A stretch of 64,000 bases of DNA from Takakia lepidozioides (taxonomy: Eukaryota > Plantae > Bryophyta), in contig CM060733.1 in NCBI GenBank assembly GCA_030704615.1, positions 18,786,001 to 18,850,000 of the forward strand, written 5' to 3'. Shown here piece by piece: positions 1 through 46,500 of the stretch. Each line of letters begins with the position of its first letter. The first letter of the stretch is position 1. The translations under genes were made by a program, and so were the position numbers. A model generated the notes under the pieces. It ran no database searches, was not told where the DNA came from, and saw nothing but the letters and a program-made list of their open reading frames with translations.

Positions 1-188
1 GATCCCGGGGGTATGAAGTCTCCTAGTAGGGCAACACTCTCAACAGTGGAAGCTCTCCCAAAGCCCAGGACGTCACCCTATCGAGCTTGGCGGAATGACA
101 ATACGTGAAAGGTAAAAATGAATGTTCGCTAGACAGACAAACCGGACACCTAAAATGGTGAGATCTCAAATGGGGACGATCAACCAAC

Positions 189-868: not shown

Positions 869-2594
869 GGCTGCCAAACTCGAAATACTTCAACAACAAC
901 AACCCAATCGAGATATATGTCTCGGAACGATCAAACACCCAACTCGGTGCACGATGAGTGCAACAATACCCACCGGGAAGAGAGCACAGAGACTAGCCGT
1001 GTGAACTACAACAGTAAACTCTGACCCCCGAAGAGTCTGTGGTATTTTTACTCATGCATTCTATATGTTTGATCCACCGCTGTAGATGCCCTCACATCTG
1101 GATCAACTCTTATTTCATCACACGTGGAGGAATCGAACAGCACCGAGTACAGAACTGGATGAATTGAAAATGTACACATCAGCAAGGATGTGGCATCTCC
1201 CCCACCTTTCACCTGCAGTTTGCAAGAGATAAAGATAAAGATTCTTTAACGTCCAGTGAATTTACAGAGCCTACTGCTCAACACACAGGCCATCGAGGGC
1301 CCAATGGACGGTCTGAAGGCACATGTTGAAGGATTGAACCCAGGATCACCTAGGTTATGCACAAACACCCAATTACTGGGCTACCTGCTCAAGTGCAGGT
1401 AGAGGGAAGCTTCGGCAGAGATCAGTGGAGGTAAGTAGGTGTACAGGAGAGGAGAGCTGATCACCCAATCCATCCAGTTTCCAGTTTCCAGTTTCCAAGG
1501 AGGCATTCACAAGGGATGAGGAAGTAGTAAGTACATCTCAAACAAGGGAGGAAGAGCCTTTCACAAACAATTCCCAGTTGGATGCCACTGGTAGGAGAGA
1601 GGGAGGTTCTAATGAGGTTGGCAAAGGAGGAGGTGCCCATCTGTAGGTGACCAATTTGGCTTGCAGTCACTAGATTACTGTGAGGCTTCAGTGGGTTTGG
1701 TGAGTACAAAATGGTTTGAAACCCTAGAATGTATGGTTTCAAGTTGTTGAAGTATTGCATTGAAGTATGAAATCAATGAGGCGCACTAGAAGATATATGG
1801 CAAGAGGTTGAAGTTCTTATCAGTGAAATAGAACGTTTCATTGCAAAGTAATGGTGTGAGTTTCACATATTCCTATGATTGCAAGTCTCCAGGGCATTCT
1901 GTCGTTGGAGATGCTACATGTAGTATTGATTTAGCAGCTAAAGGTTTCATAGAAACCAGCACTTGCCTTGAGGAATTGTCAGAGGCTCAAGGACTAGTGG
2001 CGATGATTTTACAATGACATACCGGCAACCTCTGGGATAGGACAAACACAAGATGGTACTATATCTTGAGAGTACCTGCACAACAGTATAAACGTATAAA
2101 CATTGTTGTTCTAATTTGACATTAGTGTCCTCTTAAGTTTGCACTCGGATTCGAGACAAATCATGTAATGATATGGTTTATGGGAACTCCTTGCACAATG
2201 AACCTTAGCGAAGGCTGGATCGTATAGGGTTTGCAGAGCATCATATAACTAAAACAAAGGAGGATCATGTTATTGACAAAGGCCTTCCGGTACAGAAAGG
2301 AAGGCCTGCTTTTAGTTCCAACCCTAATAAAAACTTTTAGAGTATCAACCTTGGGCACCTGCTTGGAAAGTGAATAACCTTACCATATAACTGCAATCCC
2401 ACCAGTCTACAATGTGCAAGCCTGTGCTGTCCACAGCTCTAAAGTTGCATTTACTGAGATCATATTATCAGGGTGCATTCATAACCCACATTGGCCAGAC
2501 AACAACTTCCACTACAGGAAGGAAACATGCTATAGACACGTTGTCGCCAAGAAACTGACAAGATATAGAATGATGGAGACTCTTCTGCTTCAAG

Positions 2595-5500
2595 CTATCT
2601 CTTGAACATGAGTCTCTCGTACAATGCAAGGAGATCCTTCTTGGCAGGGTTGCGCAGTAGCAAAACTTCGTTCCCAAAACCAGCTTCAGTCAACTTGACC
2701 TTGAGCTTATTCACAGTGAACTTCGTGTAATCAGACGCCCGTTCCTTTGCAACCTCATTAGAGCCGTAGTCTTCCTCCACCTCCACCCCCTTAGCATGTG
2801 CCAAGCTACTGCCATTGTCGAAGTGCTGCTCCATCCTACCCCTTTTTTGGCTTGCAACCTCAATGTCCATATCCTGGGGTGCGGATTCGCCCCCCGTCTC
2901 ATCCATCCGAGGTCTCTTACTTCGTGACGAGGTAGCGGGCGTCTCTGTGTAGGCTCTTAGCCGTGTGTCAAGTGCCGCCTCATGGTTGCGCACAGACATC
3001 AGCTGTGTTTGAAGAGCATCAAGCTCTGCCTGGACAGTTTGGACTTGCAATGACAGCGCTTCAGCACGGCTGCTTGCCTCCACTTTTGCAGCTCTTTCAC
3101 TGGCCAACAAGCTTTCAAACGCTTCTACCGTTTTTGTCCCCTGCTCCTGTGAGGATTTCAACAGCTCTGCCACCTCCTGCTCCCTTTCATCTAGATGTCG
3201 TTCCAATGATGTGGCCCGCAAAATCGCTTCCCTCTCTGCCAGCTTTGCCCTTTCGATTTCCTGCTACCACAATTGCACAGAACATGTTTTTTCGGACATG
3301 TCAAATGGCACCTAACAAGCTTGGTCATGCTACTCTCTGACTCTGCCCTCATCAGCATGTTTAAGATCCAAGTAGGATGTAAAGCTTCGGGCTCTCACTG
3401 AAAGGGTCCCAAAAGATACCTGAGTCAACTCCTCTCTCTCTCTCTGGAGCACCTCAGACCGTCGCTCAGAACATTCCACTGCAGCCAGCCTTTCCACAGC
3501 CAATCGCTCTGTCTCCAGCTTCTCCTTCTCCATCACTGTTGCCTCAAGCTGGGCCTTCCCCGCCATTTCAATGGCACGTTTTGCATCTTGCTCAGCCTCT
3601 TGTTGCTTTTGTTTGGCTTCCTTCATGTGCTTCACCAACTCAGTCATGCGCTGTTCGACAATCTGTGTCTCTCCGTGGGACTTGGCCAGATCCTTCTCTA
3701 CTGTCGAAGTCAAAGATTTGGCAGCCTCTACCTCTAATTGAAGGAGCCGCATCTCAGACTTTAGCGTCCTCAACTCTTCTTCTTGACTGGTGACTTTGGA
3801 TTCGTGCTCCTAAGAGAGAAACACCCATACATCATTCATAATACTCAAATGACCACATACATATACATATATAAGCATGGTCAAGTGCGTTAGACATTAT
3901 CAAATATAAGGATACGTGTAATTGTTTCCCACACATGGGTTCAGACACGTGATACATGACTTCTAAATTAGTACTGCTCAATAGTGGCCCCCTGTGGAAA
4001 TTAATCCTGCCTCCAAAGCAAAGCAATGTAGCTAGTTCGTGATTACACTAGCTGTCAGGTATGGCCATCATAGGACCAGACCCTTGGACCAAAGGCAGAT
4101 TGGAATAAAGACGACATCGCATAAAAATTTAAAGTGTGAAGCCTTGTTGCACAGACCTCGAGACGAGCAGTTAATCCAGCAATATATTGCTCCCCTTGCT
4201 CGACCTTAGCCTGCAAATCCTTCAAGTCACCGTCCTGCCACAGCAGAACATTAAACTTCAGATATTGGCCCACACAAACTACTGCTATGACTCCATCTTG
4301 AGAGATTGTTCAGATGAATTAGAAGAAAACCAGCATTACTCACTACTTGTGAAGATATATGGACTACGGATATATGTGCATGATAAACCATAAAAAAAAT
4401 CTATGTAACTTTGTCACCCCTCTTGCTCGTGGAGGCCGACCAAGCCTCCTCCAAAAGGTGTGCTTGATACATAGCAAACTTTCTGACTGTGCCATCTTAC
4501 CTTTCGAGTCAGACCTTGCAAGGGATCATGACCATTATGAGTATCCAACAACAGTAATCTTCTATACAAAGCCATAATAAGAATCTACCTTCTGAGCCAC
4601 AATTGAGGTAAACTCTGCACGGACAGCGTCCTCTCGAAGTTGAGCCTGCTTGATAGCTTGATCTTTCTGAGCAGTTATACTATCCACTCTGGCCATCACC
4701 TGATCTGACACTGCATCATGCCTCCGTCGCCATTCAGCAGCCTCCTCTATCGCAGATCGAGACTGGTCTTGGATTTCTGCCAGACGTGCCTCTGCAGCAT
4801 TGCACCGGTTCTGCCTCAAATAAACACAACCAATTTATGTAGTCAGGATATATTTCCACTGTCCTCCCTCAACGTCTCCCCGCATTCTCCTCCAGTGTAA
4901 GCAGTCCTAGGGTTGGGACACACAGTGTGTAAGTGCTATGTAGACAATACAGATATTCAGGAAGATAGTGTCTGCAGACAGAGTACCTGTACTTCTACCA
5001 TTTTATTTACCAAAGTTATATGAAGTTGTTGGATATACTTAAAAGAGGCATAAATAGACAGTCCTTTTAACGACGTTGGAAATGTCATTGTTCACTTACC
5101 TCCACTGCAGCTTCAGTAAACCCACTATTTGGTGGTAGTTACCCCCATCGTACGTGTTACGCACTGTGTTTACAAACCATCTTTGTAAAGAAGTATGGAT
5201 TAAGCATGAGCCCTAAAAACCTTATGGCTTGATGACTTAGTTATGTTTCATAATGCCTTCCCTTCAGCAATTATATGGATGCACCTCAAAAGTCGCATAT
5301 TCAGACCCCATCCTTTCCTCCTGTCTCTGATGTTCCCTCAGAAGATGCTCGTGCTTGCTCTGCCACTCAGAGCCCTCTTTCTTGGCCCCTTCCAGCTGCT
5401 CCCCAAGATTTGCACGTTTCTCCTCTAAGGACGTGAGCTTCCGCTGTAATACACCATACTGAGCAGCTGCATTGTCAGACGATTTTTTGTAGTCGTCAAT

Positions 5501-8500
5501 TGACAGTTCATAGCGTTTCTTCCATTCTTGTGCATCCCGTTGTGCTGCATCTGCTTTCATCCCAGCAAAGGAGAGTCTTTCCTCCATGGACCGACCTTTC
5601 GTTTCCAGGCTTGAGTATGCTGCAGCTGCTTTATCAGTTGCACGCTTCACCAGGTCATGCAGTGGCCCTGCCAAACTGCAGCATCCAATAGACCACAAGC
5701 AACATCTCAGACATGGTAAATGCTTTAGTTTTCTAAAACCCCTATTGATACCCACATTAGCTCCCATCAATTCTTCTGACCCCCAACTGACCATGTTATT
5801 CTTCCCTGCTGTGATTCGTGACTTACAGTTGTGCCCATCACGAAAGCATGACGGGGTGGAAACAAACTCAAGGGTGCTCACCTAAAGACATGGAGAGCCT
5901 ACAAAAAGACGTTGATATACCTTTTCTGCAGAAACTTTGTAAGTTTCTGCCACTTGAAGGACCCAACTGCTGCCATCTCATACTCTGCCACCAATCCATC
6001 AAGAACCTGTGAAGGTGCAGTGTAGGCAGAGTTTGGTTAAAGCCCAAGAAGATTCCACCTTGTTGAATTATATCAGCATCATAAGAAAGAAGAAACTGCA
6101 AAGCTCCCTCATTTCCAAGAAATTTTGAACAACTAAATATGAGACCCAAGCATGCAGTATAGAGTATGGAGTATTACTTTCAAAGGGCATGTGCTGCTTT
6201 TCCCAATAACGACAAACACAAACAATGACACTCTGAACAAAGGAAAACTAACTTCCTTCCTCTTCTATACATAGCAGGTTTGGCTGGACAAACCCCTTCT
6301 GTAACTTCAGCACAGATGAAGGGCCTCCTAATTAGTTGCATAAAATCTCTTCGTACAGCAGCGATAAAGATAGCGAAGAGGAATAAAGCCTAAGAGAGTA
6401 CAAGAGAAAACCAAAACCCCAAACATGTCCCGTGGAGATAAGTGCCTCATGAGAAAAGGAAAGACAGACAAGCCATACATAGTACATTCAGATCAGACAT
6501 TATTGATTGAGGTTGTTCCCAGAGAGACTAAACCTCCCACCTTCACAACAGAATCATAGGAGGCATTGGCATCATTGCATGCATTGCGCAATCTCTCTTC
6601 CATGCTGCCCACAGCTCTCAAACATTTAAGCTCAGATTCCATAGATGTCTTGCGCTTGTACTCCTGTCACATTTATCACCATTAGTTGCACGTGATATCT
6701 CATCAAAAGATCAGTCCTCAGGAGGCCAGATTACCTGCAGTTTACAAATTATCAGATTACAGACTTCAAGAACGTCAAAACATGCACTTTCAATAAAACC
6801 CCAGAAATGTTTTGCACAAAAGACAAGAAGGGAGAGAAATGGCCTTCCCAGTGAACTAACTACCTCAAATCTTTTCTTCACAGTAGAGTGAAGTTGCTTC
6901 TCATACTTCTTTCGTGCCATCCCTCCACCCACGGCTTCATTGTTATATGAAATCAGTGCTCCCCGGACGGCCTCCTCATGTGCCTCTTGTAACAAAGCCT
7001 GCAAAATCAGACATTAGTATACTATGATATCAAATATGTGGCTTTCATGTCTGTGGCTTATATGTAGCAAAGATCACGGGCACTCCTTGAAATGTGTTGG
7101 ATTGGTAGAACTACCTCCTCCGGAGGGGTTGATTTGTCGAAGGAGTGGATGTATGTTTCAACTGCAACATCATGAGCACGACGACACTCATTCTCCTCGA
7201 CATTCTGTCCCATCACCAACTTCCAACTTAGACCTCATCTTCATCTTGGTTCGAGCATTGTATTACTTGTCCACTCAGACTCCCCTGATTATATCAAATG
7301 ACAAGGGAGCTGCAGATAAGAGCTGATGGTCTAACTGTCTCCATGTACAAGGCATGATGTGCAGTTTCTTTGTCAGTCCTGACATAGAAACACTTCTGCC
7401 CTACAATGTGACCGAAGCACAGTAAATATGCTTTCAGCTCAATCAGGTACCTTGAAAGGTGGAGGAAATAGCGAAAGCTACCACAAACGAATACCTACGA
7501 TCAAACCAGAGCCATTGGCCAGCATGATTTGCCAAGGCATACAGGCAATCACAAGTTATTTCACCTCTGCAAACCATGGCATACCATGCCAAAGTCGGAC
7601 ACGAACCTGCCAAGATGTAGCTATGGTGGGCACAGCCCCAGCATTGATTGCATCCAGGAACGACTGAGTGAGGGCAGCAAACATGGGCCCTGTCAAGACA
7701 ATTGACCCCAGTTGCTTTGGTCTTGCCCTCTCAAAAATGACGTTCGTCAAAGCATCCAACCCTGATTGGAACTCTGGTCGCATTCGATCAATCTGCAAAA
7801 GCCAGTTTCACTATCAGCCTCTTCATCACCCCATACCTGTCCGTCAAACCAAGAGAAGAAAATAGAATGAGTGAGTACCATACCGGTATCTGGTCAAGGT
7901 GCTGCAACTCTTTCTCTTCATTGAGAGGCCGGACCAATGTGAAACAATCACGCTCTGGAAACAAGGCTCGGATAGAAGTTCGGATCTACAGTTCTCAAAC
8001 AAGCACCACCCTCTAGACATTAGTTCTAAAAAATCTCCAAACACAGCTGCGCACCTGGAAATCAGGTAAAACAATCTCCCAACATCAGTAAGCATGTCTT
8101 TCAAAGGTTGCAAGAACCACCCAGCTTCTCTTCAATGATAATCCCATTAGGTCCCAACAGGATTTTGGTAACATGATAGAGAGACAGACAAACCCCTTTG
8201 GAGAAGGGGCAAAAGGGCATTGAGAAGTGACCTCATTCTTGGCTGCAACAGCTTTTCCAGAGCCAGGAATGGATTGGAGTGCAGACTCGAGATAGTCCCT
8301 AGGGGTTATCCTCCGCCCATCTTCAGTAAGGTCTAAGTAAAAGTCCTGTGCAAGCCAAGGTAAATGCCTCGTGTAAGACATGTAATCCTGACCATTATTC
8401 AAGACATTTCAATAAAACTGTACTTGACACATAAACTACATCCAAGTACATCTCTGTACATCTCTGAGGATGCACACAAGTATAAGCTGGTAGGAATGAC

Positions 8501-29308: not shown

Positions 29309-30080
29309 CACTATAGGAAAAGGGGGGCCTTTGCGACGCCCGCGCCACGCCGCGGCGTCGGGAAAACGCCCTTTTCGGGCACGCGGCAAGCGCAGAATTT
29401 GCGACGCCCGGCCGTCGCCCTGCAGTCGCAAGGGCGTCGCCAAAATGACGTCGCAAAAATGCGACGTATGGGGGTCGCGAGCCCCCGCCCCAACTCCCGC
29501 GACTGCTGGACGTCGGTTTTTCAGGCCGTCCACGCCGATGGCAGGGGCCTCTTCGAACGACGTCTCGCCGTCACGGCCCTCCAGCCGACGGCATTGGTGG
29601 GGGCGCCGGCGTGGCGTTGCATCCCCTTTTTTTTCTAACCTGCCCGGGAGTCCCATCCTAAAACCCAAAAACACGTGGCGTAAGCCGGGTGGTACGCCAA
29701 GCAACTATTGGGCGTGGCAAAAAACAGCAGGAGCAGGAATCGGTCTCCGCCACGCCCGGGCGTAGGTTGTTGCGACGCTCCGGCGTCGCTTTTGTTTTAA
29801 ATTTAATCAAAAAAAAAAACATGGCGCAGGCAGGGTGGCGGTCTCCGCGACGCCAGGGCGTCGTGGCTTGCGACCCCGGACATTAAAGTCAGTTCTTCGC
29901 GATGATGGAGCCAGAAAGAAGACATAACAAAATCCATTGGGAAGTACGACTTACAAATCGCAAGATAAAACCCTTGGATCCGCCGGCGCCCCACTTGTGT
30001 GTGGATTCGTGCTTGTCAAGGCGGACTGTTGTTGCTTCGCGTGCCCGGTCAAATTTGGCCTTGTTTGCAGCATTCATATA
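29309..30080 (-). mobile_element. CACTA (En/Spm) transposon terminus with GC-rich subterminal repeats and a possible TnpA-like fragment
   Basis: Starts CACTATAGGAAAA at 29309, followed by many GCGACGCC/GGCGTCGC motifs in both orientations. ORF 29889-30077 has NKAK...HKWGAGG, resembling the H-x-x-G-x-G-G motif of Ptta/En/Spm proteins. Second TIR not found. Confidence 0.6.
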
Positions 30081-30082
30081 TA

Positions 30083-30680
30083 GAATTAATCTGGGTTTTC
30101 CAGATATCCTCTAGAAATCCCTTCACACAAGCATCAAACTAATGTGTGTGATTTGCCCAATAACTAGGCCTCAGGAAGGCCTGGGCTTCTGGCTCAGCCT
30201 TGAGACTTTCAAAGTTGGTAAACAGAGGTACAGGCACAATTCCCTTGATAGATTTGAAGAGAGCGTCTCTTTGGTGAGAGAACCCCGGACAGTGTATCAA
30301 AAAATGAGTATTGTCTTCAGATTGCCCACACAACGGGCAATTGCACTCTCCCTTTCCTCTCTGCTTTTGTTTGTTGTTCAAAGGTAGGCTTCCTGCCCTG
30401 AGTTTAAATTTCAGTCTAGTGCCGAGAGTGGGTAGACCCTTGAGGTCATCCAAGATGTCCTCCCCCATGTCACTGACTGGAAACAAGTTCAGGGAAGTTT
30501 TTTGCCTAACTTCATTTTCATCAGACAATCTCATGGCAACAGACATGGCTTTGGACACTATAGCCTCTAAGTCAGATTTATCAACCCATATTGCAGATCC
30601 GTACTCCAAGGCAGGTCTAATAATGCGACAAAGCATGGTTTTCTTAACCTCAGAGTTGACCCCTCTGCAGAAAAAGTTAA
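30083..30680 (-). mobile_element. RTE/RTEX-like non-LTR retrotransposon C-terminal fragment, internally deleted
   Basis: IIRPALEYGSAIW (RT thumb motif) is fused directly to a C-terminal region with CPLCGQSEDNTHFLIHC. Near-identical inverted copy at 41110-41610. Confidence 0.75.
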
Positions 30681-33359
30681 AAAGAGAGAGGGAGAGGGAA
30701 GATATTCACGTCATGTCAAGACATGGACAGGTCCCATAAGGGTCATTGTCAATTAAAGACATAAACAGCCCTGGATAGGGCACTATCTCACATTTCCAGT
30801 CTTGTCAAATCATCCCAAAAGACACCACCCAATCATCCAAGACAAAACAGGGTGGGAGGGCGGGGTTTGTTCTTGTGTGGGACAAGATAAGATATTGCTA
30901 TCCCTGTGCATGTTGCAAGGCCTCTTGGTTCAGCCTGTACATATACCAGCAGCTTACCAATTCAGCCATTAATTATAGCAGGTCATGCATCAGCCAAGGC
31001 ATAAGGACCAGCCTGCAGTTTGTCAGAATCTCAGCATGCCACCAAGTAGTCCAACTTGAGCCAGATGAAGTAGATTCCATATCATTTGTATTCACCCCGA
31101 GACATGTGATCATACAAGGTATCAAGGGAATGTGAATGCAGCCTGTCAGATTGCAGGTTCAAGTCTTGTACCGACAAGCAACATGAACAGCCGAGATCCA
31201 TACTCTTTAGTATAAAAAACAGACTGCAGGTCATAGGCCTGATGTCATGACAAATCCAAAACAATAGGTAGGATTCCATTGCTGTTTACCATCCTCATCC
31301 TTCGAGAGTTCCACGCTAAGACATGCAAAGAACACCTTACTATGATCCAGTACACATCAGAAGTAGGCCTGACAAGGAGCAGGGCAGTACCCTACCAGGC
31401 TGCCACCTTAAACTTCAAGGCCATCAGATCCATAGTTACCCAAAACCGCCAAAAACATACCACCAAAAACCAGATCCTCTTTGGCCAAAAAAACTTACAA
31501 CCTATCTTAGTAATCCACAGGCTTTGTTGTCAAAGATTAAAAGGTAGGGTATGGTTTGTATGCAAGCCTCAGGAAACAAGCCCGTCAGGCCGAGCTGCGC
31601 ATCGGCGGCAGAACGACAAAGGCCAGAACGCAGGTTGTAGCATATCAAGTCAGGGGCAGTTGGGTTGAAATCGGGGCTGAAGTCAGCACCCACCTCACAG
31701 CGCGCAAACCCCTAGGTCTCATCAGCCCATATCCCAATCTGCATGCTCAAGAAACTTCAAAGTAGGTGAGGATCCTCACCTGGTCCCATCACAAGCCCCC
31801 ACAAAAACCAACAGGTTAGTGAGGATTGTGGAACCCCAGGTGAATCACAGACCCTCACACTTGTCATCGATGTCAACTAAGAAACTCAAAAGCAAGAGAA
31901 AGAGATAAGAACGTGAGAATCCCTAAACTCCAAAGGCACCTTAAGCGATTGGGGAAGAGGGTTATGCGCCATCACCACCCGTAGCAACACTAGAAGAGAA
32001 ACCGGCTTTTTCCATGGCTTTTTCCACACTTTTTGCTGTGGAATCAGCCGCAGTCCACACCTGCCAAAGGAACGACTAGTGCTTTCGGACACCCCGTGGA
32101 CGGCCTGGCTCTCGGGTGGCCCTGTGGAAAAGTCCACGGGAGGCTTTTTCCATGGGTGGGCTTTTTTCACGGGGTGCATGGTGACATGGCCGATGGCATA
32201 GCTGACATGGCAGAGTGTGAAAAAAGGCCAGTGTGGCATGTTTCACGGCAGATTTCACACCTTGAACAAGCCACTATGCGACACGTGTCATATTTCACAC
32301 CTTCGACAAGTCACTATGCAACACGTGTTCGTTCCTGTGTGGTGGTACACATTAATTAATTATTATTTGCTTTCCAATATTAAGTTTGAATATTAATGGA
32401 TTTAATTTATTGTTATTATTATTATTATTATAGGAAAAATGGACAGTGGCTTGGATGAGAATATTATTAAATAACAAAATATTGAAATTATGTTTTTAGA
32501 AATTATATTTATTCGCACAGATACCAAAACACACCCTTTGCAGGGAAGGAGAGTTTGCCTTAGTGTCTATGCTGAGTTGCGTCTCCTACTCTCTGTAATC
32601 TAATAGACATTCACCTTTTTCCCTCGGTTGTCCCACCCTTGATTGCGGTCAGAAAAGCATTCATTCCACAGCTTCTCCTCATCTCTGTTACATGCTTCTG
32701 GATACTTTCCTATTGTCACTTTGGTAGTATTATGTCAAAATCACTCCAAACTATGTACCATCTACCTAGGCAGGTTTCTTGTAGCTAACCCTCCACAGGG
32801 AATCATAAGTAATCTGGAGCTTGAAATCTGGCCCTCTTGGATGACACTCTATCCCTGCTCCTTCAGCTATCCATGCCTCTGCACAGATCATGCATACATC
32901 CTTGCATTGCTGTTAGCAGCTGACAATGGCAGCCTAGATTTGTTCTAGCAAACACCCAACTCATCTTATCACACCAAGTTCCTATTCTCAATTGCATCTA
33001 CCACTCTGTAATCCAAAGGCATTTACCTTCCAAGACGGTTGTCCCAACATTGACTGGGGTCAGAAAAGTATTCATTCCATAGCTTCTCCTCTCTGTTACC
33101 TATTTCTGGATACTTTCCTATTGTCACTTTGGCAGTATCATGTCAAAGTCACTCCAAACTATCAAAGGTTCACTCAACCAGCTAACTTGCAGAATTCTTA
33201 AAACATGAAAATTTAGGGCGATTCTGATAAGAGGGGAAAACAGAGTGAAATGGGTTGAAGAAGGTGCCTTGAATAGCATTGCCTGATTTTATCAATTGTG
33301 CCGCTGCTGCTGCGGCTTCCAGTTGACCATCTACCCATGCACGTTTCTTGGAGCTATTT

Positions 33360-33960
33360 TTTCCACGGGGAATCACCCCTTCCCGCATCATTGCTCATAG
33401 GTCTCCAAAGCCTCCATCTGCGCCCTTGCTGTGCATATCCTGCAATCATTGCACTCCACGACACCACATCTCATTCAGCCATACTGTCAAACACTTTCTT
33501 TGCATCCTCGATGCACCCACATTTGGCATACATGCAGTCCACCAGGGCAGTGTTCAGAATGACATTGGGTACAATTCCAGATTTGACGATGTCACCATGG
33601 ACCTCTTTGCCTTTTTCTAGAGCTCCCAGGCTTGCACATGCATTACAAACAAATGTGATGTGGTTGGGCTTCACCCCTTCGCGCAGCAGTTGCTCATAGG
33701 TCTCCAAATCATTCCTACCACACCCATGTTAAATCCTGCCAACATTATATTCAACGTGATCAAAGTTCGTTGAGGAATTCCGTTGAACACTCGGTGTGCA
33801 TTCATGATGCTCCTGCACTTAACATACATGTTCACAAGGGGGTTGAGGAGAAAAACACTTGGTGTGAATCCACTTTGGATAATGTGACTGAAATGCTCCT
33901 TGGTTTAAAGGGTGTAGAGCCTCTTTCAGTCTGCCTGCCTCACAAAGCATCTTCACATGC
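33360..33960 (-). pseudogene. Degenerate 5' part of a PLS-class PPR gene
   Basis: VKMLCEAGRLKEAL first-motif-like segment, then frameshifted S/P/L motifs (KPNHITFVCNACASLGALEKGKEVHG, LVDCMYAKCGCIEDAKKVFDSM). Indels and stops are present; no E/DYW domain is recognisable. Confidence 0.8.
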
Positions 33961-34047
33961 CCAAAAGAGCAAGAAGAGGCATTATGGACTCCCTCTCTTG
34001 ATCCTCTTTTAGAAGCTGTGGTATGGTTGAGGTGCCTGATTTAAATT

Positions 34048-37000
34048 AGGGCTGCCAGGCCTGCAATGCACACAAACATGATGTGGCCGAGCTGAACCCC
34101 TTCCCCCATCATTTGCTCATAGGTCTCCAAAGCCTCCATCCCACGTCCCTGCTGTGCATACCCTGCAAGCATCGCACTCCACGACACCACATCTCGTTCA
34201 GCCATAGTGTTGAACACTCCCTTTGCATCCTCGATGCACCCACATTTTGCATACATGTCCACTAGGGTATTGTTCAAAATGACATTTGGTACAATTTCAG
34301 CTCTGAAGGTGTCACCATGGACCTCCTTCCCCTTTTCCAGAGCTGCCAGAGCAGTGTTTCAAATGACATTAGGTACAATTCCAGCTTTGATGATATCCCC
34401 ATGCACCTCTTTGCCCTTCTCCAGGGCTGCCAGGCCTGCAATGCATACAAACATGATGTGGCCGGGCTGAACCCCTTCCCCCATCATTTGCTCATAGGTC
34501 TCCAAAGCCTCCATCCCACATCCCTGCTGTGCATACCCTGCAAGCATCGCACTCCATGACACCACATCTCGTTCAGCCATAGTGTTGAACACTCCATTTG
34601 CATCCCCGATGCACCCACATTTTGCCTACATGTCCACTAGGGTATTGTTCAAAATGACATTTGGTACAATTCCAGCTCTGAAGGTGTCACCATGGACCGC
34701 CTTCCCCTTTTCCAGAACTGCCAGGGCAGTGTTTCGAATGACATTAGGTACAATTCCAGCTTTGATGATATCCCCATGCACCTCTTTGCCCTTCTCCAGG
34801 GCTGCCAGGCCTGCAATGCATACAAACATGATGTGGCCGGGCTGAACCCCTTCCCCCATCATTTGCTCATAGGTCTCCAAAGCCTCCATCCCACGTCCCT
34901 GCTGTGCATACCCTGCAAGCATCGCACTCCACGACACCACATCTCGTTCAGCCATAGTGTTGAACACTCCATTTGCATCCCCGATGCACCCACATTTTGC
35001 CTACTAGGGTATTGTTCACAATGACATTTGGTACAATTCCAGCTCTGAAGGTGTCACCATGGACCTCCTTCCCTTTTTCCAGAGGTGCTAGGGCAGTGTT
35101 TCGAATGACATTAGGTACAATTCCAGCTTTGATGATATCCCCATGCACCTCTTTGCCCTTCTCCAGGGCTGCCAGGCCTACAATGCATACAAACATGATG
35201 TGGCCGGGCTGGACTCCTTCCTTCTTCAGTTGCTTATAGGTCTCCAAAGCCCCCATCCCACGTCCATGCTGTGCATACCCTGTAAGCATCGCAGTCCACG
35301 ACACCACATCTCGTTGAGCCATAGTGTTGAACACTCCCTTTGCATCCCCGATGCACCCACATTTTGCATACATGTCCACTAGGATATTGTTCAGAATGAC
35401 ATTTGGTACAATTCCAGCTCTGAAGATGACACCACGGACCTCCTTCCCCTTTTCCAGAGCTGCCAAGGCAGTGTTTCGAATGACATTAGGTACAATTCCA
35501 GCTTTGATGATATCCCCATGCACCTCTTTACCCTTCTCCAGGGCTGCCAGGCCTACAATGCATACAAACATGATGTGGCTGGGATGGACCCTTCCCCCAT
35601 CATTTGTTCATAGGTCTCCAAAGCCTCCATCCCACGTCCCTGTTGTGCATACCCTCCAAGCATCGCACTCCACGACACCACATCTCGTTCAATCATAGTG
35701 TGGAACACTCCCTTTGTATCCCCGATGCACCCACATTTTGCCTACATGTCCACTAGGGTATTGTTCAAAATGACATTTGCTACAATTCCAGCTCTGAAGG
35801 TGTCACCATGGACCTCCTTCTCTTTTTCTAGAGCTGCCAGGGCAGTGTTTCGAATGACATTAGGTACAATTCCAGCTTTGATGATATCCCCATGCACCTC
35901 TTTGCCCTTCTCCAGGGCTGCCAGTCCTGCAATGCATACAAACATGATGTGGCCGGGCTGGACTCCTTCCTTCTTCAGTTGCTCATAGGTCTCCAAAGCC
36001 TCCATCCCACGTCCCTGCTGTGCATACCCTGCAAGCATCACACTCCACGACACCACATCTCGTTGAGCCATAGTGTTGAACACTCCCTTTGCATCCCCGA
36101 TGCACCCACATTTTGCATACATGTCCACTAGGATATTGTTCAGAATGACATTTGGTACAATTCCAGCTCTGAAGATGACACCACGGACCTCCTTCCCCTT
36201 TTCCAGAGCTGCCAGGGCAGTGTTTCGAATGACATTAGGTACAATTCCAGCTTTGATGATATCCCCATGCACCTCTTTACCCTTCTCCAGGGCTGCCAGG
36301 CCTACAATGCATACAAACATGATGTGGCTGGGATGGACCCCTTCCCCCATCATTTGCTCATAGGTCTCCAAAGCCTCCATCCCACCTCCCTGCTGTGCAT
36401 ACCCTCCAAGCATCGCACTCCACGACACCACATCTCGTTCAGCCATAGTGTTGAACACTCCCTTTGTATCCCCGATGCACCCACATTTTGCCTACATGTC
36501 CACTAGGGTATTGTTCAAAATGACATTTGGTACAATTCCAGCTCTGAAGGTGTCACCATGGACCTCCTTCTCTTTTTCCAGAGCTGCCAGGGCAGTGTTT
36601 CGAATGACATTAGGTACAATTCCAGCTTTGATGATATCCCCATGCACCTCTTTGCCCTTCTCCAGGGCTGCCAAGCCTGTTATGCATACAAACATGATGT
36701 GGCCGGGTTGGACCCCTTCCCCCATCAGTTGCTCATAGGTCTCCAAAGCCTCCATCCCATGTCCCTGCTGTGCATACCCTTCAAGCATCACACTCCACGA
36801 CACCACATCTCGTTCAGCCATAGTGTTGAACACTCCCTTTGCATCCTCGATGCACCCACATTTTGCATACACGTCCACCAGGGTATTGTTCAAAATGACA
36901 TTTGGTACAATTCCAGCTCTGAAGGTGTCACCATGGACCTCCTTCCCTTTTTCCAGAGCTGCCAGGGCAGTGTTTCGAATGACATTAGGTACAATTCCAA

Positions 37001-38945
37001 CTTTGATGATATCCCCATGCACCTCTTTGCCCTTCTCCAGGGCTGCCAGGCTTGCCAATGCATACAAACATGATGTGGCCGGGTTGGACCCCTTCCCCCA
37101 TCAGTTGCTCATAGGTCTCCAAAGCCTCCATCCCATATCCCTGCTGTGCATACCCTGCAAGCATCACACTCCACGACACCACATCTCGTTCAGCCATAGT
37201 GTTGAACACTCCCTTTGCATCCTCGATGCACCCACATTTTGCATACATGTCCACCAGGGTATTGTTCAAAATGACATTTGGTACAATTCCAGCTCTGAAG
37301 GTGTCTCCATGGACCTCCTTCCCTTTTTCCAGAGCTGCCAGGGTAGTGTTTCGAATGACATTAGGTACAATTCCAGCTTTGATGATATCCCCATGCACCT
37401 CTTTGCCCTTCTCCAGGGCTGCCAAGCCTGCAATACACACAAACATGATGTGGCCGGGTTGGACCCCTTCCCCCATCAGTTGCTCATAGGTCTCCAAAGC
37501 CTCCATCCCATGTCCCTGTTGTGCATACCCTGCAAGCATCACACTCCACGACACCACATCTCGTTCAGCCATAGTGTTGAACACTCCCTTTGCATCCTCG
37601 ATGCACCCACATTTTGCATACATGTCCACCAAGGTATTGTTCAAAATGACATTTGGTACAATTCCAGCTCTGAAGGTGTCACCATGGACCTCCTTCCCTT
37701 TTTCCAGAGCTGCCAGGGCAGTGTTTCGAATGACATTAGGTACAATTCCAACTTTGATGATATCCCCATGCACCTCTTTTCCCTTCTCCAGGGCTGCCAG
37801 GCTTGCCAATGCATACAAACATGATGTGGCCGGGTTGGACCCCTTCCCCCATCAGTTGCTCATAGGTCTCCAAAGCCTCCATCCCATATCCCTGCTGTGC
37901 ATACCCTGCAAGCATCACACTCCACGACACCACATCTCGTTCAGCCATAGTGTTGAACACTCCCTTTGCATCCTCGATGCACCCACATTTTGCATACATG
38001 TCCACCAAGGTATTGTTCAAAATGACATTTGGTACAATTCCAGCTCTGAAGGTGTCACCATGGACCTCCTTCCCTTTTTCCAGAGCTGCCAGGGCAGTGT
38101 TTCGAATGACATTAGGTACAATTCCAACTTTGATGATATCCCCATGCACCTCTTTTCCCTTCTCCAGGGCTGCCAGGCTTGCCAATGCATACAAACATGA
38201 TGTGGCCGGGTTGGACCCCTTCCCCCATCAGTTGCTCATAGGTCTCCAAAGCCTCCATCCCATATCCCTGCTGTGCATACCCTGCAAGCATCACACTCCA
38301 CGACACCACATCTCGTTCAGCCATAGTGTTGAACACTCCCTTTGCATCCTCGATGCACCCACATTTTGCATACATGTCCACCAGGGTATTGTTCAAAATG
38401 ACATTTGGTACAATTCCAGCTCTGAAGGTGTCTCCATGGACCTCCTTCCCTTTTTCCAGAGCTGCCAGGGCAGTGTTTCGAATGACATTAGGTACAATTC
38501 CAACTTTGATGATATCCCCATGCACCTCTTTGCCCTTCTCTAGGGCTGCCAAGCCTGCAATGCATACAAACTTGATGTGGCCGGGTTGGACCCCTTCCCC
38601 CATCAGTTGCTCATAGGTCTCCAAAGCCTCCATCCCATGTCCCTGTTGTGCATACCCTGCAAGCATCACACTCCACGACACCACATCTCGTTCAGCCATA
38701 GTGTTGAACACTCCCTTTGCATCCTCGATGCACCCACATTTTGCATACATGTCCACCAGGGTATTGTTCAAAATGACATTTGGTACAATTCCAGCTCTGA
38801 AGGTGTCACCATGGAGCTGCCAGGGCAGTGTTTCGAATGACATTAGGTACAATTCCAGCTTTGATGATATCCCCTTGCACCTCTTTGCCCTTCTCAAGGG
38901 TTGCCAGGCTTGCACAAGCATTGCAATGCACACAAACATGATGTG
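34048..38945 (-). repeat. Tandem array of 13 near-identical ~375-bp PLS-PPR coding units (125 aa each), frameshifted; PPR pseudogene or satellite
   Basis: Anchor AAACATGATGTG (or a 1-nt variant) recurs at ~34074, 34449, 34824, 35191, 35566, 35940, 36315, 36690, 37066, 37441, 37817, 38193, 38568 and 38934. Units of 367, 374 and 376 bp break the frame. Confidence 0.95.
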
Positions 38946-40936
38946 AGAGGGCAAAACAGGTTGAAATAGGTCAAAGAAGAAGATGCGCTCACTACATTGT
39001 CCTTGAGGTTGTATCATGACTTGACCGACCATCAACCCAAAAGGACCTCTTGTGTGTGTTGCTTGTGTCTGTAGTCAGGTAATGTCGGATTGGTCTGTGA
39101 GATCGAACCACCACGGTGTAGCTAAGTAGGCAGAGATTGAAACACGGCCTGCTATGACCAAGCTAACTCTCCCAAGGACGGCAGGCTCGCAAGAATGTTG
39201 CGAGCTTCTCCTCGTCTCATCTCCTCCTCCTCTCCTCCTTCCTGCATCATTTGCTCAACGCCTCCATCCCACGCCCCTGCATATCTTGCGATCATCGCGT
39301 TCCATCCCTCAGCTACATGGTGTGGCGCAGGGAGACAAAAAAAAACGCCAAGTCCCAGCCCTCCTTTGTGTTCACGATTACCCTAATGGGCAACCTTATT
39401 AGCAACTTTTTGATTTTTTAACCTTTTGCACTTTGATTCATTTTAGGTCAGAGGCTAAAGTCCTGCTACCAGACTTGTCTAGAAAACCAAAACACCACGT
39501 AGACAAACATTTGATAATGGTAATAAAAAATATTACCATTGGGCTGGTTTGAACACTTGTTAGTAAATTTATGTTAGGATTTTTAGGTTAGGATTTTTTC
39601 GAAATATTCTGGTTTTTTCTTTGATGTGTGAGATGACAAAGTCCAAGCATGTCACATAAACAAGGAGTTCAACGTAAGGATGATGCAAGTGATTTGTGGC
39701 AAAAAGTGTAAATCATGCCTATGCCTATTTGTCCTAGTTGTGTCATAGGTTGCAACGGAACGGGGCCACCTTTGAATGCGATCCCCATGCTCATTTCACC
39801 AAGGGCATTATAGACTTCATAATGGAGAGATTGAAAATGGGGTGTATTCTTCACTTGCTAGTAGCCCATCGTATGCTTCCAACTCTTCCTGTTGAGCCTT
39901 AATACATTAGATGAGCTTTATTAGAACACATACTTTCTATTAAAGACTATTGCCTTTGATTTCTGCTACACTACGTGATGGTGCTGGATTTGTTGTTTTA
40001 CAGCACAACATAAGCTTTTTTCGGTTTATAGTACTGGTATGATGCTGTGGCTTGAATGATATCAAGCATCTAAGTAAGAGGACATAGGGAACCACAATCT
40101 TTTGTTTTTAGGCCATGTATGATGCCTGATGCAGACCATCTGGGTTCCTGTCCTTCTCTACTTGTTTGTGACCTTGCAAGTACCCTGCTAGAGCAGATAC
40201 AGATTGCCCCAAGACCTAAAACGGGCTCTGGGATAGACTGGCTTTACTACTAAGGCATATACCATGACATATTTTTCTGGATTTCTATATAGTCTGTGAT
40301 TATCAGTAATCACTTACTGCTCAAAACCTTTCGAATCCATTTATACACTGGCCCCAGATTGAAACTAGGTCTTGGGACAAAAAACAAGATGTGTGGACAT
40401 CCCCTTCATGTGTAAATAGTTTAGAAGCTGTTTATTGCTCTAATCTGACCATTATGGCTATATGAAAACTGGGACTTCTTCTCCAGTTTATTAATGGGAA
40501 CATGGGTGGTAAACTTAGCAAGTTAAACATAATTTTCTTGCTATGAAATGTTTCTAATATTCCGTATGAAGCATACCCTTGATTGGGTCCCTGTTTGTCT
40601 GAAACGGATGTTTATATGATCCCACCCCCCCTCCCAGAGATTTCATGAACTGTGAGATCTGTTATATGTCATCAGACTGGTTTATGAATGAAGAGTGATT
40701 GAAAGTGCCTCGTTATGAGGCTGATTTGTCATACAAATTGACAAAGACCTTGTTTGGTCTTGTCCATGTCTTGACAAGACATTTTATCTTCTCTCTCTCT
40801 CTCCTCTCTTTTGTGCTGCTCACAAAAAAAAAAAACCACAGAGGGAAAGAGGGGGTAGGAAAAGTTAATAAGAGAGAGAGGGAGACAGAGGGAGAGAGGG
40901 GGAACAATGAAAAAAAATGGGTTGGGGGGGGGGGGA

Positions 40937-42960
40937 GGTCAGATGGTGGGGTCAGCTGCAGCATATGTCCAACACCAGATATCCCAAGTTAATCGACTCT
41001 ATATCTTGGAAACAGGCCACCGACCTGTCAAACAGGCTAAGTCCTGGCAGAAGACAGTAGAAGAGATTCTCAAGGACCTGGACCTGGAACCGCAAGTCTT
41101 CACCCTGCTGGATAAATATGACTTAGAAGCTATAGTGTCCAACCGTGTCTGTTGCCATGAGATTGTCTGATGAAAATGAAGTTAGGCAAAAAACTTCCCT
41201 GAACTTGTTTCCAGTCAGTGACATGGGGGAGGACATCTTGGATGACCTCAAGGGTCTACCCACTCTCGGCACTAGACTGAAATTTAAACTCAGGGTAGGA
41301 AGCCTACCTTTGAACAACAAACAGAAGCAGAGAGGAAAGAGAGAGTGCAATTGCCCGTTGTGTGGACAATCTGAAGACAATACTCATTTTCTGATACATT
41401 GTCCGGGGTTCTCTCACCAAAGAGACGCTCTCTTCAAATCTATCAAGGGAATTGTGCATGTACCTCTGTTTACTAACTTTGAAAAAGTCGAGGCTGAGTC
41501 AAAAGCCCAACCCCATCTGAGGCCTAGTTTTTGGGCATCTCACACACAGCAGATTGATGCTTGTGTGAAGGGATTTGTAGAGGATATCTGGAAAACCCGG
41601 ATTAATTCTATATGTGAAGGTAAGTCTTACTACCAACGTCAGCCCCTGACAGAGGTAGGATCTGTCCCTTTTATTTCCCCAAGAGAGGGGGCAACAAAGA
41701 AAAAAAAAGAATGTGGGGGGGGGGGTGATCAGCAACAGCTGCTCAGTCACCCCCCCCCCCCACCTTTTTTTTTTTTTTTGTTGCCCCCTGATGTCTCCCT
41801 CTCACTCCCTCTCTCTGTCCCTCTCTCTCGCTCTCTCGCTCTCGCTCTCTCTCCCTCTCTTCTGTGCTGCTCTCTTTTAAGCTCCCGACGAGATAAATCC
41901 AAGGTCAGATGGTGGGTTCAGCTGCAACATATGTCCAACACCAGATATCCTAAGTTAATCGACTATATATCTTGGAAACAGGACCGCCCACCGACTTGTC
42001 AAACAGGCTAAGTCCTGGTAGAAGACAGTAGAAGAGATTCTCAATGACCTGGACCTGGAACCGCAAGTCTTCACCCTGCTGGATAAATCTGACTTAGAGG
42101 CTGTAGTGTCCAACCATGTCTGTGGGCAACCTGAAGACATTATTCATTTTCTGATACACTGTCCGGGGTTCTCTCACCAAAGAGACGCTCTCTTCAAATC
42201 TATCAAGGGAATTGTGCATGTACCTCTGTTTACTAACTTTGAAAAAGTCGAGGCTGAGCCAAAAGCCCAACCTTTTCTGAGGCCTAGTTTTTGGGCATCT
42301 CACACACAACAGATTGATGATTGTGTGAAGGGATTTGTAGAGGATATCTGGAAAACCCGGATTAATTCTATATGTGAAGGTAAGTCTTACTACCAACGTC
42401 AGCCCCTGACAGAGATAGGATCTGTCCCTTTTATTTCCCCAAGAGAGGGGGCAACAAAGAAAAATAGAGAATGTGGGGAGTGACTGACCCTCTCTTCTGT
42501 GCTGCTCTCTTTTAAGCTCCCGACACCCTAAATTCAAGGTCAGATGGTGGGTTCAGCTGCAACATATATCCAACACCAGATATCCTTAGTTAATCGACTC
42601 TATCTCTTGGAAACAGGACCGCCCTGTCAAACAGGGTGAGCCCTGGGAGAAGAGAGTAAAAGAGATTCTCAAGGATCTGAATCTGGACCCGCAAGTCTTG
42701 ACCTTGCTGGATAAACTTGACTTAGAGAGTGTAGTGTCCTTGAAAGCCATGTCTGTTACCAGAAAATTGTCCGATGAAAATGAAGTTAGGAAGAAAACTT
42801 CCCTGAACCTGTTTCCAGTCTGTGACATGGGGGAGGACATCATGGATGCGCTCAAGGGTCTATCCCACTCTTGGGACCAGACCTAAATTTAAAGTCAGGG
42901 CAAGAAGACTACCTTTGAACAGTAAACAGAAGTAGAGAGGAAATGGAGAGTGCAATTTCC
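40937..42960 (+). mobile_element. Three tandem, differently deleted C-terminal segments of the RTEX-like LINE
   Basis: Segments start GGTCAGATGGTGG at ~40937, 41902 and 42538. They encode KVRWWVQLQHMSNTRYPK (RTE-like W..L..M...R.PK) and CPLCGQSEDNTHFLIHC, and are separated by (CT)n and homopolymer tracts. Confidence 0.8.
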
Positions 42961-43319
42961 CTGACGTACCTCTGCTGCTGCAGGTGCTTGAAGCGAGTTG
43001 GGTCCCCGCCGCTTCAGGGCGTCTCTCCCCCGCTCACCACGGCTCTCTCTCTCTCTCTTCAGTTCGTTAGGTCGCGCCTCTGCGCGGCGTTCCTACCACA
43101 CAGGGGAGAGAGACATCAGCCTGTGCTTAGGGCAAGAAAGAAAGACAGAAAGTGAGGGAGGAGGCGGTGTTTACCTTGGGGCCTTGCGACCACCTCGGGC
43201 TCAGCAGCAGGTGCGTTTCTCCTCCACCCTAAACCCACTCTTTGAACTACCTCTCTCCCAAAGAACAAACGAAAACGGGAGGGGAAAGAGATGCTTCAAG
43301 CACTTAGGGGAAAAAAAGG

Positions 43320-43594: not shown

Positions 43595-46500
43595 GTTTAT
43601 ATTTATTTATATTTATTTTTTCATATGGTACTGGGTTAGAGTGTTTGCTTTTCTTTATGGTGTTGGGTTTTGGATTGGCGGTTTTGGTTGTGGGTCTTGG
43701 GGTTAAAAGGATAAACGGTGTAATTAGGATTCAGAGCCCTGTAAAGAAGGGATGGAGAGAGATCCAACTAAACGCTGGTGAGAGGGAGCTGCCATAACAT
43801 AGCAGCAAAACACATAAAAGATGAGCCAAAGTGCAAAACTGTTTGGATCCCAGCTGAGGGAGGAGAGAGTTCTAGAGTTGCTCACTGGCAGCAGCAAAAT
43901 GGGCTTTCCTATAAGAGCTAAAGATAGACTTGTAACAAACTGCTAACAGCCTAAGGTTGGTACATGACTAGAGTCCGAAAGTGAGCTGAATGCAAAATAG
44001 GCCCAAGTCTGAAAACAGGCAATGCAGCCCCAGGGATGCCTTCCCCAATTACCCTCCAAAATCCAGCTGCGCTTTAGACTTTGGTGGCCCCTGCTTCTGA
44101 TGGCGCCAATTGACGTCCGGTGCTTCGGAGTCAGCAGGTGATTTTCCAGGGCCTGGGGATGTCGTCATGCCAAACAATTCTGGATTCTGAGAGCCTGGAG
44201 CAGATGAGGTTGCCCTTTGCCCAGGTGAGGTCGAACTCCGCGAACAATCGTTGGCGCTTCCTTTCACTGCACCTGCTAGAAGCTGAAATCAAAGTCACCC
44301 AAGCTTACGTCCCTTAGTCATCAAATCAGCATACAATCTGGCAAGCAATGTTCTGATGCTGGGACTGCCTCCCTGGAAAATTAAGGAACACTTAGCTTTC
44401 CAAACTGTCCAGAGAGCATGGCCTCTGAGGGTAGCCCAGATGGGGCATCTGTCCCATGGAGATCCATTGTGCAGATTTAGTAATAGCAAAGGGGCAGAGA
44501 GAGGGGGCAACGCATTCCAATTGGCATAGAGGGCTTCCACGTAACCCCATATTCTTGAGGAAATGTGACATTGGAGTAGGCAGTGCTCCATTGTTTCCCT
44601 AACTCCACAGGAGCAGATTAAACAAGCAGGGTCCATGTCAATGAAAGAATCTGCCACATGTAAAATACGGTTCGCTATTTTCCACAAGAAGGCACTGACT
44701 TTGGCTGAACGGTGTTTGGTTCAGATGTCTCTCCACACCTTGTTCCAGCAGGAGATTGGTAGGTTGAGGGACCACTTGCTATTCCACCTTCACAAGCACT
44801 AGCGATATTGGCAGGGCACTCATTATTCAGAAGCAAAGTTGTACCATCAGCATACATTGACAATTTGACAGACGAGTCCTGAGAAACTTTCAGACCCACT
44901 ATGTCTAGAAGCAAAATAATGCCCTAGAGCGTCTGCTGCTATCAGGAACAGGTAAGGGGCTAATGGGCATCCCTGCCTTACAGACCTGAAGAGAACAAAT
45001 GGTTTTGCTATGGCCCCGTTAACAGAGACCCTGCTAGATGCTGAGCTGAGGAGAAGCCTTACCCATGTAGAGAAAGTTTCCGGCATACCAATTTTGTCCA
45101 TCACTTTTTGCAGGAAGCCCCACTCAATATTGTCAAAGGCCTTTTCAAAATCTAGCATAAGAATGGCCAGAGGCTGCTCCGTGTATTTTGCTTTGTGCAT
45201 GGCTTCATGAATGAGGAGCAGGTTGTTAAGGATCATTCTTCCCTTGAGGAATCCAGTTTGCTCTGGTCTAATAATCCGAGAGAGAACTGGTTGGAGCCTT
45301 AGGGCCAAGGCCTTGGCAATGATCTTATAAGTGGTGTTTAGCAATGTGATAGGCCTATAGTTGGATAGCTTACTCTTGTCCCTTTAAAAAAAAATCAAAG
45401 TGATCAATCGTGCGGACATTTGTGATGGCATAATGCCCTTCTAGAGTATATCCTTTGTCATAGCCACAAAATCATCCACTATGGTATGCCAAAGAGCCTT
45501 AAAGGATTCTATGGGAAGTCCATCCAAACTAGGCATTTTACCAGATTTCAGAGAATTCATGGCATGCGCCAGCTGACGAGCCCTGGTCGCGCGCGGCCAG
45601 GGTGACGGCATACTAGCCTAGGGGGTCGTGGCAAGTTGCGGTGTAGGTTGGGCTCAACGAACCGCCTACCCGGCTGCGGTAAGTGTAGGGGTCCGTGGCA
45701 ACTATGGACGGATCTAAACAGTCTAACTTCCTACCGGCAAAACAAAGCTTAACAACTCCACTTCACATGCCGATTTGTGTTTCCTAGTCCTACGTTTTGT
45801 TTATGGGTTTTCTACGTTTTTAATCGTAATTGCCTTCCAAGTCTTTGTTTATTACTACTTCTTACATGCATGGACTCCCAACACGCTTATAGCCGGGACG
45901 AACCTTCAAATCCCTGCACAAAACGAATCTCGAGCCCAGAAGAACGGGGATCATCTATCTCCCGCCCAATGCCCCCCCTAAATCCTGAGGTGGATTAGTT
46001 TCCTACCTCCTAGGAAGAGACCAGATCCGCTTTCCCAAGTCAGTCTCTCATGCTTAGAGCGATCCAAGTTTCAACCTCAATGGTCAGTCCATCGGGTGAA
46101 TGATAACTATTCAAACCTCTAGGTAATTCCCGAGATCTAATAAAACAATGGCCGTTCCTTGGCCCAAGGCCCCCCAGCGGCCGGGTACTTGACTTCAAAT
46201 ATCCTCGGCGGAAGGGGGCGATACCTCATTTAAAACTTCCGTTTTTAAGTTAAGGGGGTCCGGATAAAATCCCTTATTAAAGGCGAAATACCCTGCTGAA
46301 TAATAAAGAACAAATCATTAAAACCCTCCTACAAATGCATGAAATTCGTAGAAAATCGTAGGATGCTGGAGCTAACTAAATTACCCTCAAGGTACCAGGG
46401 GAACACCTTGGGAACACCCTTTATGTCGAACCGCTCTCCACTTGGGAGCGCCCCTAAATTCCTATACCAATCAATAACGCATTAGCAACTGAAACCATCA

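Follow-up and report, generated by a model that had tools for sequence, protein, structure and literature searches.

A 64,000-nt stretch of contig CM060733.1 of the bryophyte Takakia lepidozioides, hereafter the window, holds a tandem array of a 375-bp unit that encodes pentatricopeptide repeat (PPR) motifs of the PLS class, the class of organelle RNA-editing factors. Tandem Repeats Finder (TRF) delimits the array at 34048-38914, with a period of 375, 13.0 copies, 94% matches and a score of 8510, a periodicity far beyond chance, and BLAST with a clean unit carries its first, partial copy on to 38945. The coding sense is the minus strand, on which alignment resolves the array, as it stands in the one assembly from which the copy number is taken, into the following copies, listed in sense order with the lesions that each of them carries.

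34048..38945, minus strand: whole array, 12 full and 2 partial head-to-tail copies of the 375-bp PPR-derived unit (TRF, BLAST, alignment, Pfam)
38945-38769, minus strand: U00p, partial first copy, beginning at the L motif, with a 20-nt deletion (BLAST, alignment)
38768-38394, minus strand: U01, no lesion
38393-38018, minus strand: U02, +1
38017-37642, minus strand: U03, +1
37641-37267, minus strand: U04, no lesion
37266-36891, minus strand: U05, +1
36890-36516, minus strand: U06, no lesion
36515-36141, minus strand: U07, TAG at codon 8
36140-35766, minus strand: U08, no lesion
35765-35392, minus strand: U09, -1 and TAG at codon 8
35391-35017, minus strand: U10, no lesion
35016-34650, minus strand: U11, -8 deletion across codons 6-8
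34649-34275, minus strand: U12, TAG at codon 8 and TGA at codon 97
34274-34048, minus strand: U13p, last copy, 227 nt, broken off within the L motif, where unrelated sequence takes over (BLAST, alignment, three-frame translation)

Pairwise identity among the units ranges from 91.7 to 99.7%, with a mean of 95.1%. The first-pass annotation, made from the letters of the window, had described 13 near-clonal 375-bp units at this place; the array, its period and a copy number of about 13 (TRF) all stand, whereas only U02, U03 and U05 are truly near-clonal (99.5-99.7%). The GC content of the array (0.49-0.51) lies above that of its surroundings, the plus-strand GC skew across it is strongly negative (-0.21 to -0.30), and no further copy of the 375-bp unit was found elsewhere in the 64-kb window.

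Anatomy of the repeated unit

The sense open reading frames (ORFs) of the array match the Pfam families PPR, PPR_1 and PPR_2 (best E-value 8e-25), and both Pfam and reading by eye find in the units the fixed tandem order of P, L and S motifs that characterizes the PLS class. Placing the motif boundaries by the published definitions, we infer that the unit of 125 codons comprises a 31-aa S motif (VILNNTLVDMYAKCGCIEDAKGVFNTMAERD), a 35-aa P motif (VVSWSVMLAGYAQQGHGMEALETYEQLMGEGVQPG), an L motif shortened to 31 aa and an extra half-motif of 28 aa (VIRNTALAALEKGKEVHGDTFRAGIVPN), the last of which joins the first residues of an S motif to the second half of an L motif. The L motif of the partial first copy U00p is longer and ancestral-like, extending 11 nt beyond that of the full units (alignment). 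When we used a 277-aa two-unit ORF as the query of a word-index search, which covers proteins of 152-485 aa and leaves longer kin outside its range, only PPR proteins were returned, the best of them from the clubmoss Diphasiastrum complanatum at 48-50% identity, followed by ferns and gymnosperms at about 35%.

In these Diphasiastrum relatives the canonical PLS triplet measures 101 aa, or 303 bp, and the Takakia unit is not a plain triplet because the added half-motif brings it to 375 bp. An earlier claim that a single S-P-L block had been amplified thus holds as far as the presence of the S-P-L block goes and leaves out the half-motif, which appears at the DNA level as an 84-bp repeat nested in every copy (1.8-2.0 copies at 79-83%; TRF). 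The 28-aa spacing of the 'E.GK.VH' motif to which this gives rise is absent among the 120 best database homologues, so that within this set the half-motif is particular to the Takakia locus. The residues at position 5 and the last position, which set the specificity of PPR motifs, are N/D, S/G, V/N and T/N in the four motifs of the unit and hardly vary from unit to unit. A protein encoded by the array would be expected to recognize one and the same four-letter pattern a dozen times over, which would be unlike the recognition tract for an editing site. AlphaFold2, run without an alignment on a 238-aa two-unit ORF, returned a mean predicted local distance difference test score (pLDDT) of 46, a poor score.

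Lesions, order of duplication and selection

Five frameshifting indels and four stop codons are scattered over the array. The +1 common to U02, U03 and U05 consists in a gap, relative to U00p, of 10 nt rather than 11 nt, the three TAG codons arose by TAT>TAG at codon 8 of U07, U09 and U12, and the TGA at codon 97 of U12 by CGA>TGA. The -1 of U09, which sits in a G run, is the sole lesion that resembles a possible homopolymer sequencing error. Indels of +1, -1 and -8 had already been reported by the first-pass annotation and were all borne out by the unit alignment. Its longest ORF of 307 aa is indeed the longest on the sense strand (38112-39035), where it runs partly through out-of-frame sequence, but the array's longest mechanical ORF of all, at 333 aa, is antisense and lies on the plus strand; none of the long plus-strand antisense ORFs, which reach this length, has a Pfam match.

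Both ends of a PLS-PPR gene are missing. Pfam found no match to E1, E2 or DYW on the ORF pieces downstream of the array, and tblastn with four natural C-termini gave matches to PPR motifs only across the whole 64 kb, which agrees with the statement of the first-pass annotation that no E or DYW domain follows the array and extends it to the entire window. No N-terminal region was found upstream of the array in the three-frame translation, where PPR similarity begins abruptly at about 39330. The locus therefore offers neither the continuous ORF with an N-terminal targeting region nor the C-terminal E1 and E2 motifs, with or without a DYW domain, that make up a PLS-PPR gene.

We also built the unit-by-unit alignment and maximum-likelihood tree that had been proposed as a check on the array, and these resolved stepwise duplications of one and of two units. 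The tree groups U07 with U09 (support 100/99; 98.1% identical) and U08 with U10 (98/95; 96.3%), and since alternate units are thus sisters and neighbours are not, a two-unit, 750-bp block was duplicated. Three blocks can be distinguished along the array.

36516..38768, minus strand: U01-U06, young clade, 97.1-99.7% identical (support 94/89, identity matrix)
35017..36515, minus strand: U07-U10, duplicated 750-bp two-unit block (tree, translations)
34275..35016, minus strand: U11 and U12, 97.8% identical to each other (alignment, identity matrix, translations)

The oldest units in the tree lie at the 3′ end of the array. The TAG stop is common to the sisters U07 and U09 and present in U12 too, and because this stop and the +1 frameshift are each common to sister units, the lesions were duplicated along with the units, and amplification outlasted the loss of the frame. 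Nested local duplications of one and two units with one younger end are, as far as the unit sequences tell, the pattern expected from unequal exchange, and the interleaved sister pairs and the young U01-U06 clade lend support to an early suggestion that a PPR block had expanded here by unequal crossover or slippage; replication slippage is inseparable from unequal exchange by the pattern of the unit tree.

The differences among units are in line with neutral drift. The 68 variant states among the 12 full units fall on codon positions in a ratio of 23:21:24 (chi-square p = 0.90); 24 of them are synonymous, 42 are nonsynonymous and 2 create stops, compared with 20.0±3.6 synonymous changes and 2.6 stops in a permutation that moves each base change to a randomly chosen site with the identical starting base (P = 0.16). 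The two 84-bp halves within a unit tell a different story: they share 77% identity and differ by 12.3 synonymous and 6.7 nonsynonymous changes, with a ratio of nonsynonymous to synonymous differences per site (pN/pS) of 0.18, and their differences fall on codon positions as 3:5:11, with a binomial P of 0.002 for at least 12 synonymous of 19 under the neutral proportion. Purifying selection, as expected of a PLS-PPR gene, is thus visible between the 84-bp halves only and not among the units. Each half is also closer to the L motif of a PPR fragment downstream of the array (83% and 86%) than to the other half. This closeness, together with the selected divergence of the halves, makes the internal repeat old and shaped in a working gene, so that the ancestor of the locus was a working gene. 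The 84-bp repeat would be either an ancient 84-bp duplication or the remainder of two consecutive triplets that lost an internal stretch in frame, and the 375-bp amplification, by contrast, is to judge from these patterns young and unconstrained.

It might be argued that the array is a giant PPR gene that works now or did so until very recently, its lesions being errors of assembly or sequencing, or that its copy number is an artefact of assembly. Lesion-free units exist (five), the unit spans a whole number of codons (125), and the -1 of U09 is of a type that long reads typically produce in a G run. Most of the lesions, however, lie outside homopolymers (the 10-nt versus 11-nt gap, the 8-nt deletion, TAT>TAG three times and CGA>TGA), several are common to sister units, no start region, transit peptide or E/DYW domain accompanies the units, and the variation among them is neutral, while an artefactual expansion would not look like copies that differ by 0.3-8% in a nested, tree-like pattern. 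We consider both versions of this explanation highly improbable.

Our preferred reading, to which we assign a probability of about 0.8, is that the array is a pseudogene-derived minisatellite that grew from a fragment of a PLS-class PPR gene. Like a minisatellite, it consists of head-to-tail copies of one unit free of coding constraint. A fragment of a gene for an organelle RNA-editing factor would have carried the 125-codon block of S, P, short L and 28-aa half-motif, in a gene lineage whose PLS tract was already internally repetitive and would thereby have provided homologous sequence that could misalign. The 84-bp internal repeat would have arisen and diverged while the gene still worked. 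The block would have been amplified head to tail, one or two units each time, by repeated out-of-register recombination, through unequal exchange between sister chromatids or homologues, possibly together with replication slippage. We infer this recombination mechanism for the growth of the array. The 375-bp amplification would be much younger than the internal repeat and would have continued after the frame was broken, the copies then drifting neutrally. The locus is by all appearances dead, because of its frameshifts and stops, its missing gene ends, the neutral differences among units and the copied lesions; it would now make no functional PPR protein, and protein expression is presumably absent.

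Two observations weigh against this reading. Five of the 12 full units (U01, U04, U06, U08 and U10) are free of lesions, and the pooled Nei-Gojobori pN/pS among units is 0.57, below 1. The ratio could hint faintly at weak residual constraint or at a short coding phase early in the expansion; by the permutation test it is not significantly different from neutrality.

A dead satellite had been one of several fates suggested for the array at the outset, and a dead array is indeed favoured by the neutral variation, the copied lesions and the absence of gene ends, albeit on the scale of a minisatellite, as one 4.9-kb array. The other suggestions amount to a functional non-coding locus, acting either as a source of small RNA directed at the PPR family or as a gene-conversion donor and module reservoir. 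Tandem direct repeats in plants often attract 24-nt small interfering RNAs (siRNAs) and methylation, and the observed/expected ratio of CpG is 0.27 in the array versus 0.45 in the window, although the low value may equally reflect the codon usage of the ancestral gene. Targets would exist in a genome as rich in PPR genes as that of Takakia, which is reported to have 2,016 (PMC13386178). The window, however, lacks an inverted copy of the unit with which a hairpin might be formed, and the best database relatives are too distant, at the 48-50% identity given above, to include a known conversion recipient. The idea of a reservoir is weakened further by the specificity residues, whose near-invariance across units leaves no diversity of modules to donate. 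We regard a functional non-coding locus as quite improbable, and the dead minisatellite remains our reading of the array.

A mosaic of gene fragments and its possible transposon context

The PPR sequence of the window is limited to 33354-39330 (tblastn). The remaining pieces, and the repeats that surround the locus, are as follows.

38946..39330, minus strand: decayed P-L-S-P motifs directly upstream of the array, legible only across several frames (three-frame translation, by eye)
33354..33956, minus strand: fragment B, an N-terminal-type PPR piece with stops and frameshifts (BLAST, tblastn; Pfam PPR on 33471-33707)
33094-33011 and 32677-32612, minus strand: two copies, about 420 bp apart, of a 'EEKLWNEYFSDPSQCWDNR' motif, EEKLWNE(Y/C)FSD..Q.WDNR, 3′ of the PPR fragments
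30073-30582, minus strand: left arm of a pair of 510-bp inverted repeats flanking the PPR locus
41111-41618, plus strand: right arm of the pair, 94%
42082-42378, plus strand: further partial copy of the arm
42704-42962, plus strand: further partial copy of the arm

Fragment B, the downstream fragment whose L motif was compared with the 84-bp halves, starts about 90 nt past the end of the array at 34048 and is truncated at about 33354. It reads ..LCEAGRLKEAL.. followed by L-S-P-L-S-P, and its triplet is 81-86% identical to the array unit at the DNA level; comparison with the Diphasiastrum protein P0008 and tblastx to a broken PPR-DYW gene of Diphasiastrum (locus L001, described below) identify it, at the level of sequence similarity, as the N-terminal part of a gene. 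The EEKLWNE motif also lies upstream of that same Diphasiastrum gene, at 5039-5122 of L001 (tblastx 64%, E 8e-9), and its two copies behind the Takakia PPR pieces resemble the front end of a third gene copy that is otherwise missing. The PPR locus is thus a head-to-tail mosaic of incomplete gene pieces, which may have come about by decay of a cluster of gene copies or as cargo carried by a Helitron-type element.

The latter possibility leads to an alternative account of where the array grew, in which the PPR fragments, array included, are the cargo of a DNA transposon of the Pack-MULE or Helitron type, and the array expanded inside that element, or through its rolling-circle or replicative behaviour, and not at a native gene locus. 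The mosaic itself, with fragment A and its array, fragment B and the two copies of the EEKLWNE motif arranged head to tail, the last being an OSB-like 'PDF' motif whose usual place is in front of such genes, would fit such an origin, as would the 510-bp inverted repeat pair around the locus. The arms, however, do not look like terminal inverted repeats: the ~510-bp repeat encodes a protein tail, ..RPALEYGSAIW..CPLCG..HFLIHCP.., with a zinc-knuckle-like motif, which we take, partly from that motif, to be LINE-like (long interspersed nuclear element). The arms probably encode the C-terminus of a LINE ORF2 and are probably 5′-truncated LINE 3′ ends, a reading for which there is a weak atlas lead to zf-RVT (0.89) and no match in Pfam. 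They also recur twice more on one side of the locus, and the inverted arms show no target-site duplication. In the 10 of the 13 long ORFs (at least 160 aa) outside the array that were scanned we found no transposase and no Rep/helicase, and copying of a whole element fails to explain a 375-bp period or the nested duplications of one and two units. Transposon cargo is accordingly an unlikely origin of the array; it bears on the location of the fragment and is compatible with our reading of the array as a dead minisatellite.

A Pack-MULE in particular, which should have terminal inverted repeats and a target-site duplication of 9-11 bp, was considered and ruled out by the lack of such a duplication, the extra arm copies on one side and the LINE-like C-terminal ORF in the arms.

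Several other features of the window were recorded in passing.

44847-45344, minus strand: reverse-transcriptase ORF fragment (Pfam RVT_1, E 9e-22), oriented opposite to the neighbouring LINE-like tails
40872-40903 and 41794-41860: (GA)n and (TC)n microsatellites, 200-300 bp from the right-hand arm
41686-41789: near-palindrome of a G-run/A-run against a C-run/T-run, with 43-nt arms that are 86% complementary and 18 nt apart, adjoining the (TC)n
23-877, minus strand: ORF for the succinate dehydrogenase (SDH) iron-sulfur subunit, 284 aa without interruption (Fer2_3, E 1.6e-33)

The last of these is apparently intronless over this stretch, and its best matches, at 71-82%, come from moss, Sphagnum, liverwort and Diphasiastrum, with no near-identical entry in the protein collection, a pattern that places the genome among land plants of bryophyte grade.

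Comparison with known PPR repeat expansions

The motifs within one PPR gene were initially assumed to be highly divergent, an assumption that does not survive comparison with Diphasiastrum, where successive 101-aa triplets are 80-90% identical in five proteins; the median triplet identity over 119 matches of at least 210 aa is 47.5%. At the DNA level we observed two arrays in this genome.

GCA_029204225.1 CM055101.1, locus positions 5980-7769: L001, 303-bp PLS-triplet array, 5.9 copies, 90%
MU834743.1, locus positions 4337-5228: L002, 303-bp array, at least 2.9 copies, 90%, reaching the contig end

The L001 gene keeps its N-terminus, its E motifs and its DYW domain (PF14432, E 2.6e-24) and is frameshifted, and its ORF pieces are annotated as separate hypothetical proteins. 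The Diphasiastrum arrays resemble the Takakia array in that PLS blocks are copied head to tail, with 90% DNA identity and a frame split into several ORFs, and since they too lie in broken frames, amplification of PLS blocks accompanied by loss of frame occurs in the clubmoss as well. They differ from it in that their unit is one canonical 101-aa triplet in 3-6 copies and in that L001 retains both the N-terminal region and the C-terminal E motifs and DYW domain.

Duplication of internal blocks of PPR motifs is an accepted model for PLS genes, according to the passage of PMC2848758 that cites Rivals et al. Duplication of a block of five repeats has been reported in the Rfo genes of radish (PMC2848758), and motif duplication by unequal crossing-over has been described for the Rf-like (RFL) genes of rice (PMC5075784). 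The Takakia array shares with these cases the tandem, in-phase duplication of whole motif blocks within a gene, presumably by out-of-register recombination. The published PLS and Rf-like cases amount to one old duplication or a few in functional genes, unlike the Takakia array, which has about 13 copies at 91.7-99.7% DNA identity and an aberrant 28-aa half-motif, all in a dead gene fragment.

Minisatellites that derive from genes or pseudogenes and have a higher-order structure are a generally known class, and the array matches them in its head-to-tail copies, its neutral drift, its younger and more homogeneous end and its two-unit higher-order duplication. It differs from a true satellite in being a single locus of 4.9 kb within the window. 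In a limited literature collection we found no description of multi-copy, near-identical PLS arrays, of tandem repeats derived from PPR genes or of the Diphasiastrum arrays.

PPR editing factors are among the largest gene families of plants, and the gain and loss of their repeats has mostly been inferred from old, diverged duplications. The Takakia locus is a new example of a known process, unusually clear and extreme, and carries no sign of present function. Together with the Diphasiastrum arrays it offers a snapshot of an early stage, in which blocks are copied in phase and the order of events can still be read, and it displays the cost of the process, as the tract that ran away lies in a dead gene. 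It also carries a warning for annotation, since its five PPR-positive sense ORFs of 152-307 aa may be miscounted as PPR genes in censuses of the family. We raise only tentatively, as a possibility that we ourselves think doubtful, that tandem amplification of PLS blocks is a general and so far undescribed motor, and a by-product, of the PPR expansions in editing-rich early land plants. If this were true, internally repetitive PLS tracts would repeatedly run away by unequal crossing-over, here and independently in Diphasiastrum, and such runaway would lengthen some working editing factors, kill others and leave behind a recurrent class of PPR-derived tandem repeats.

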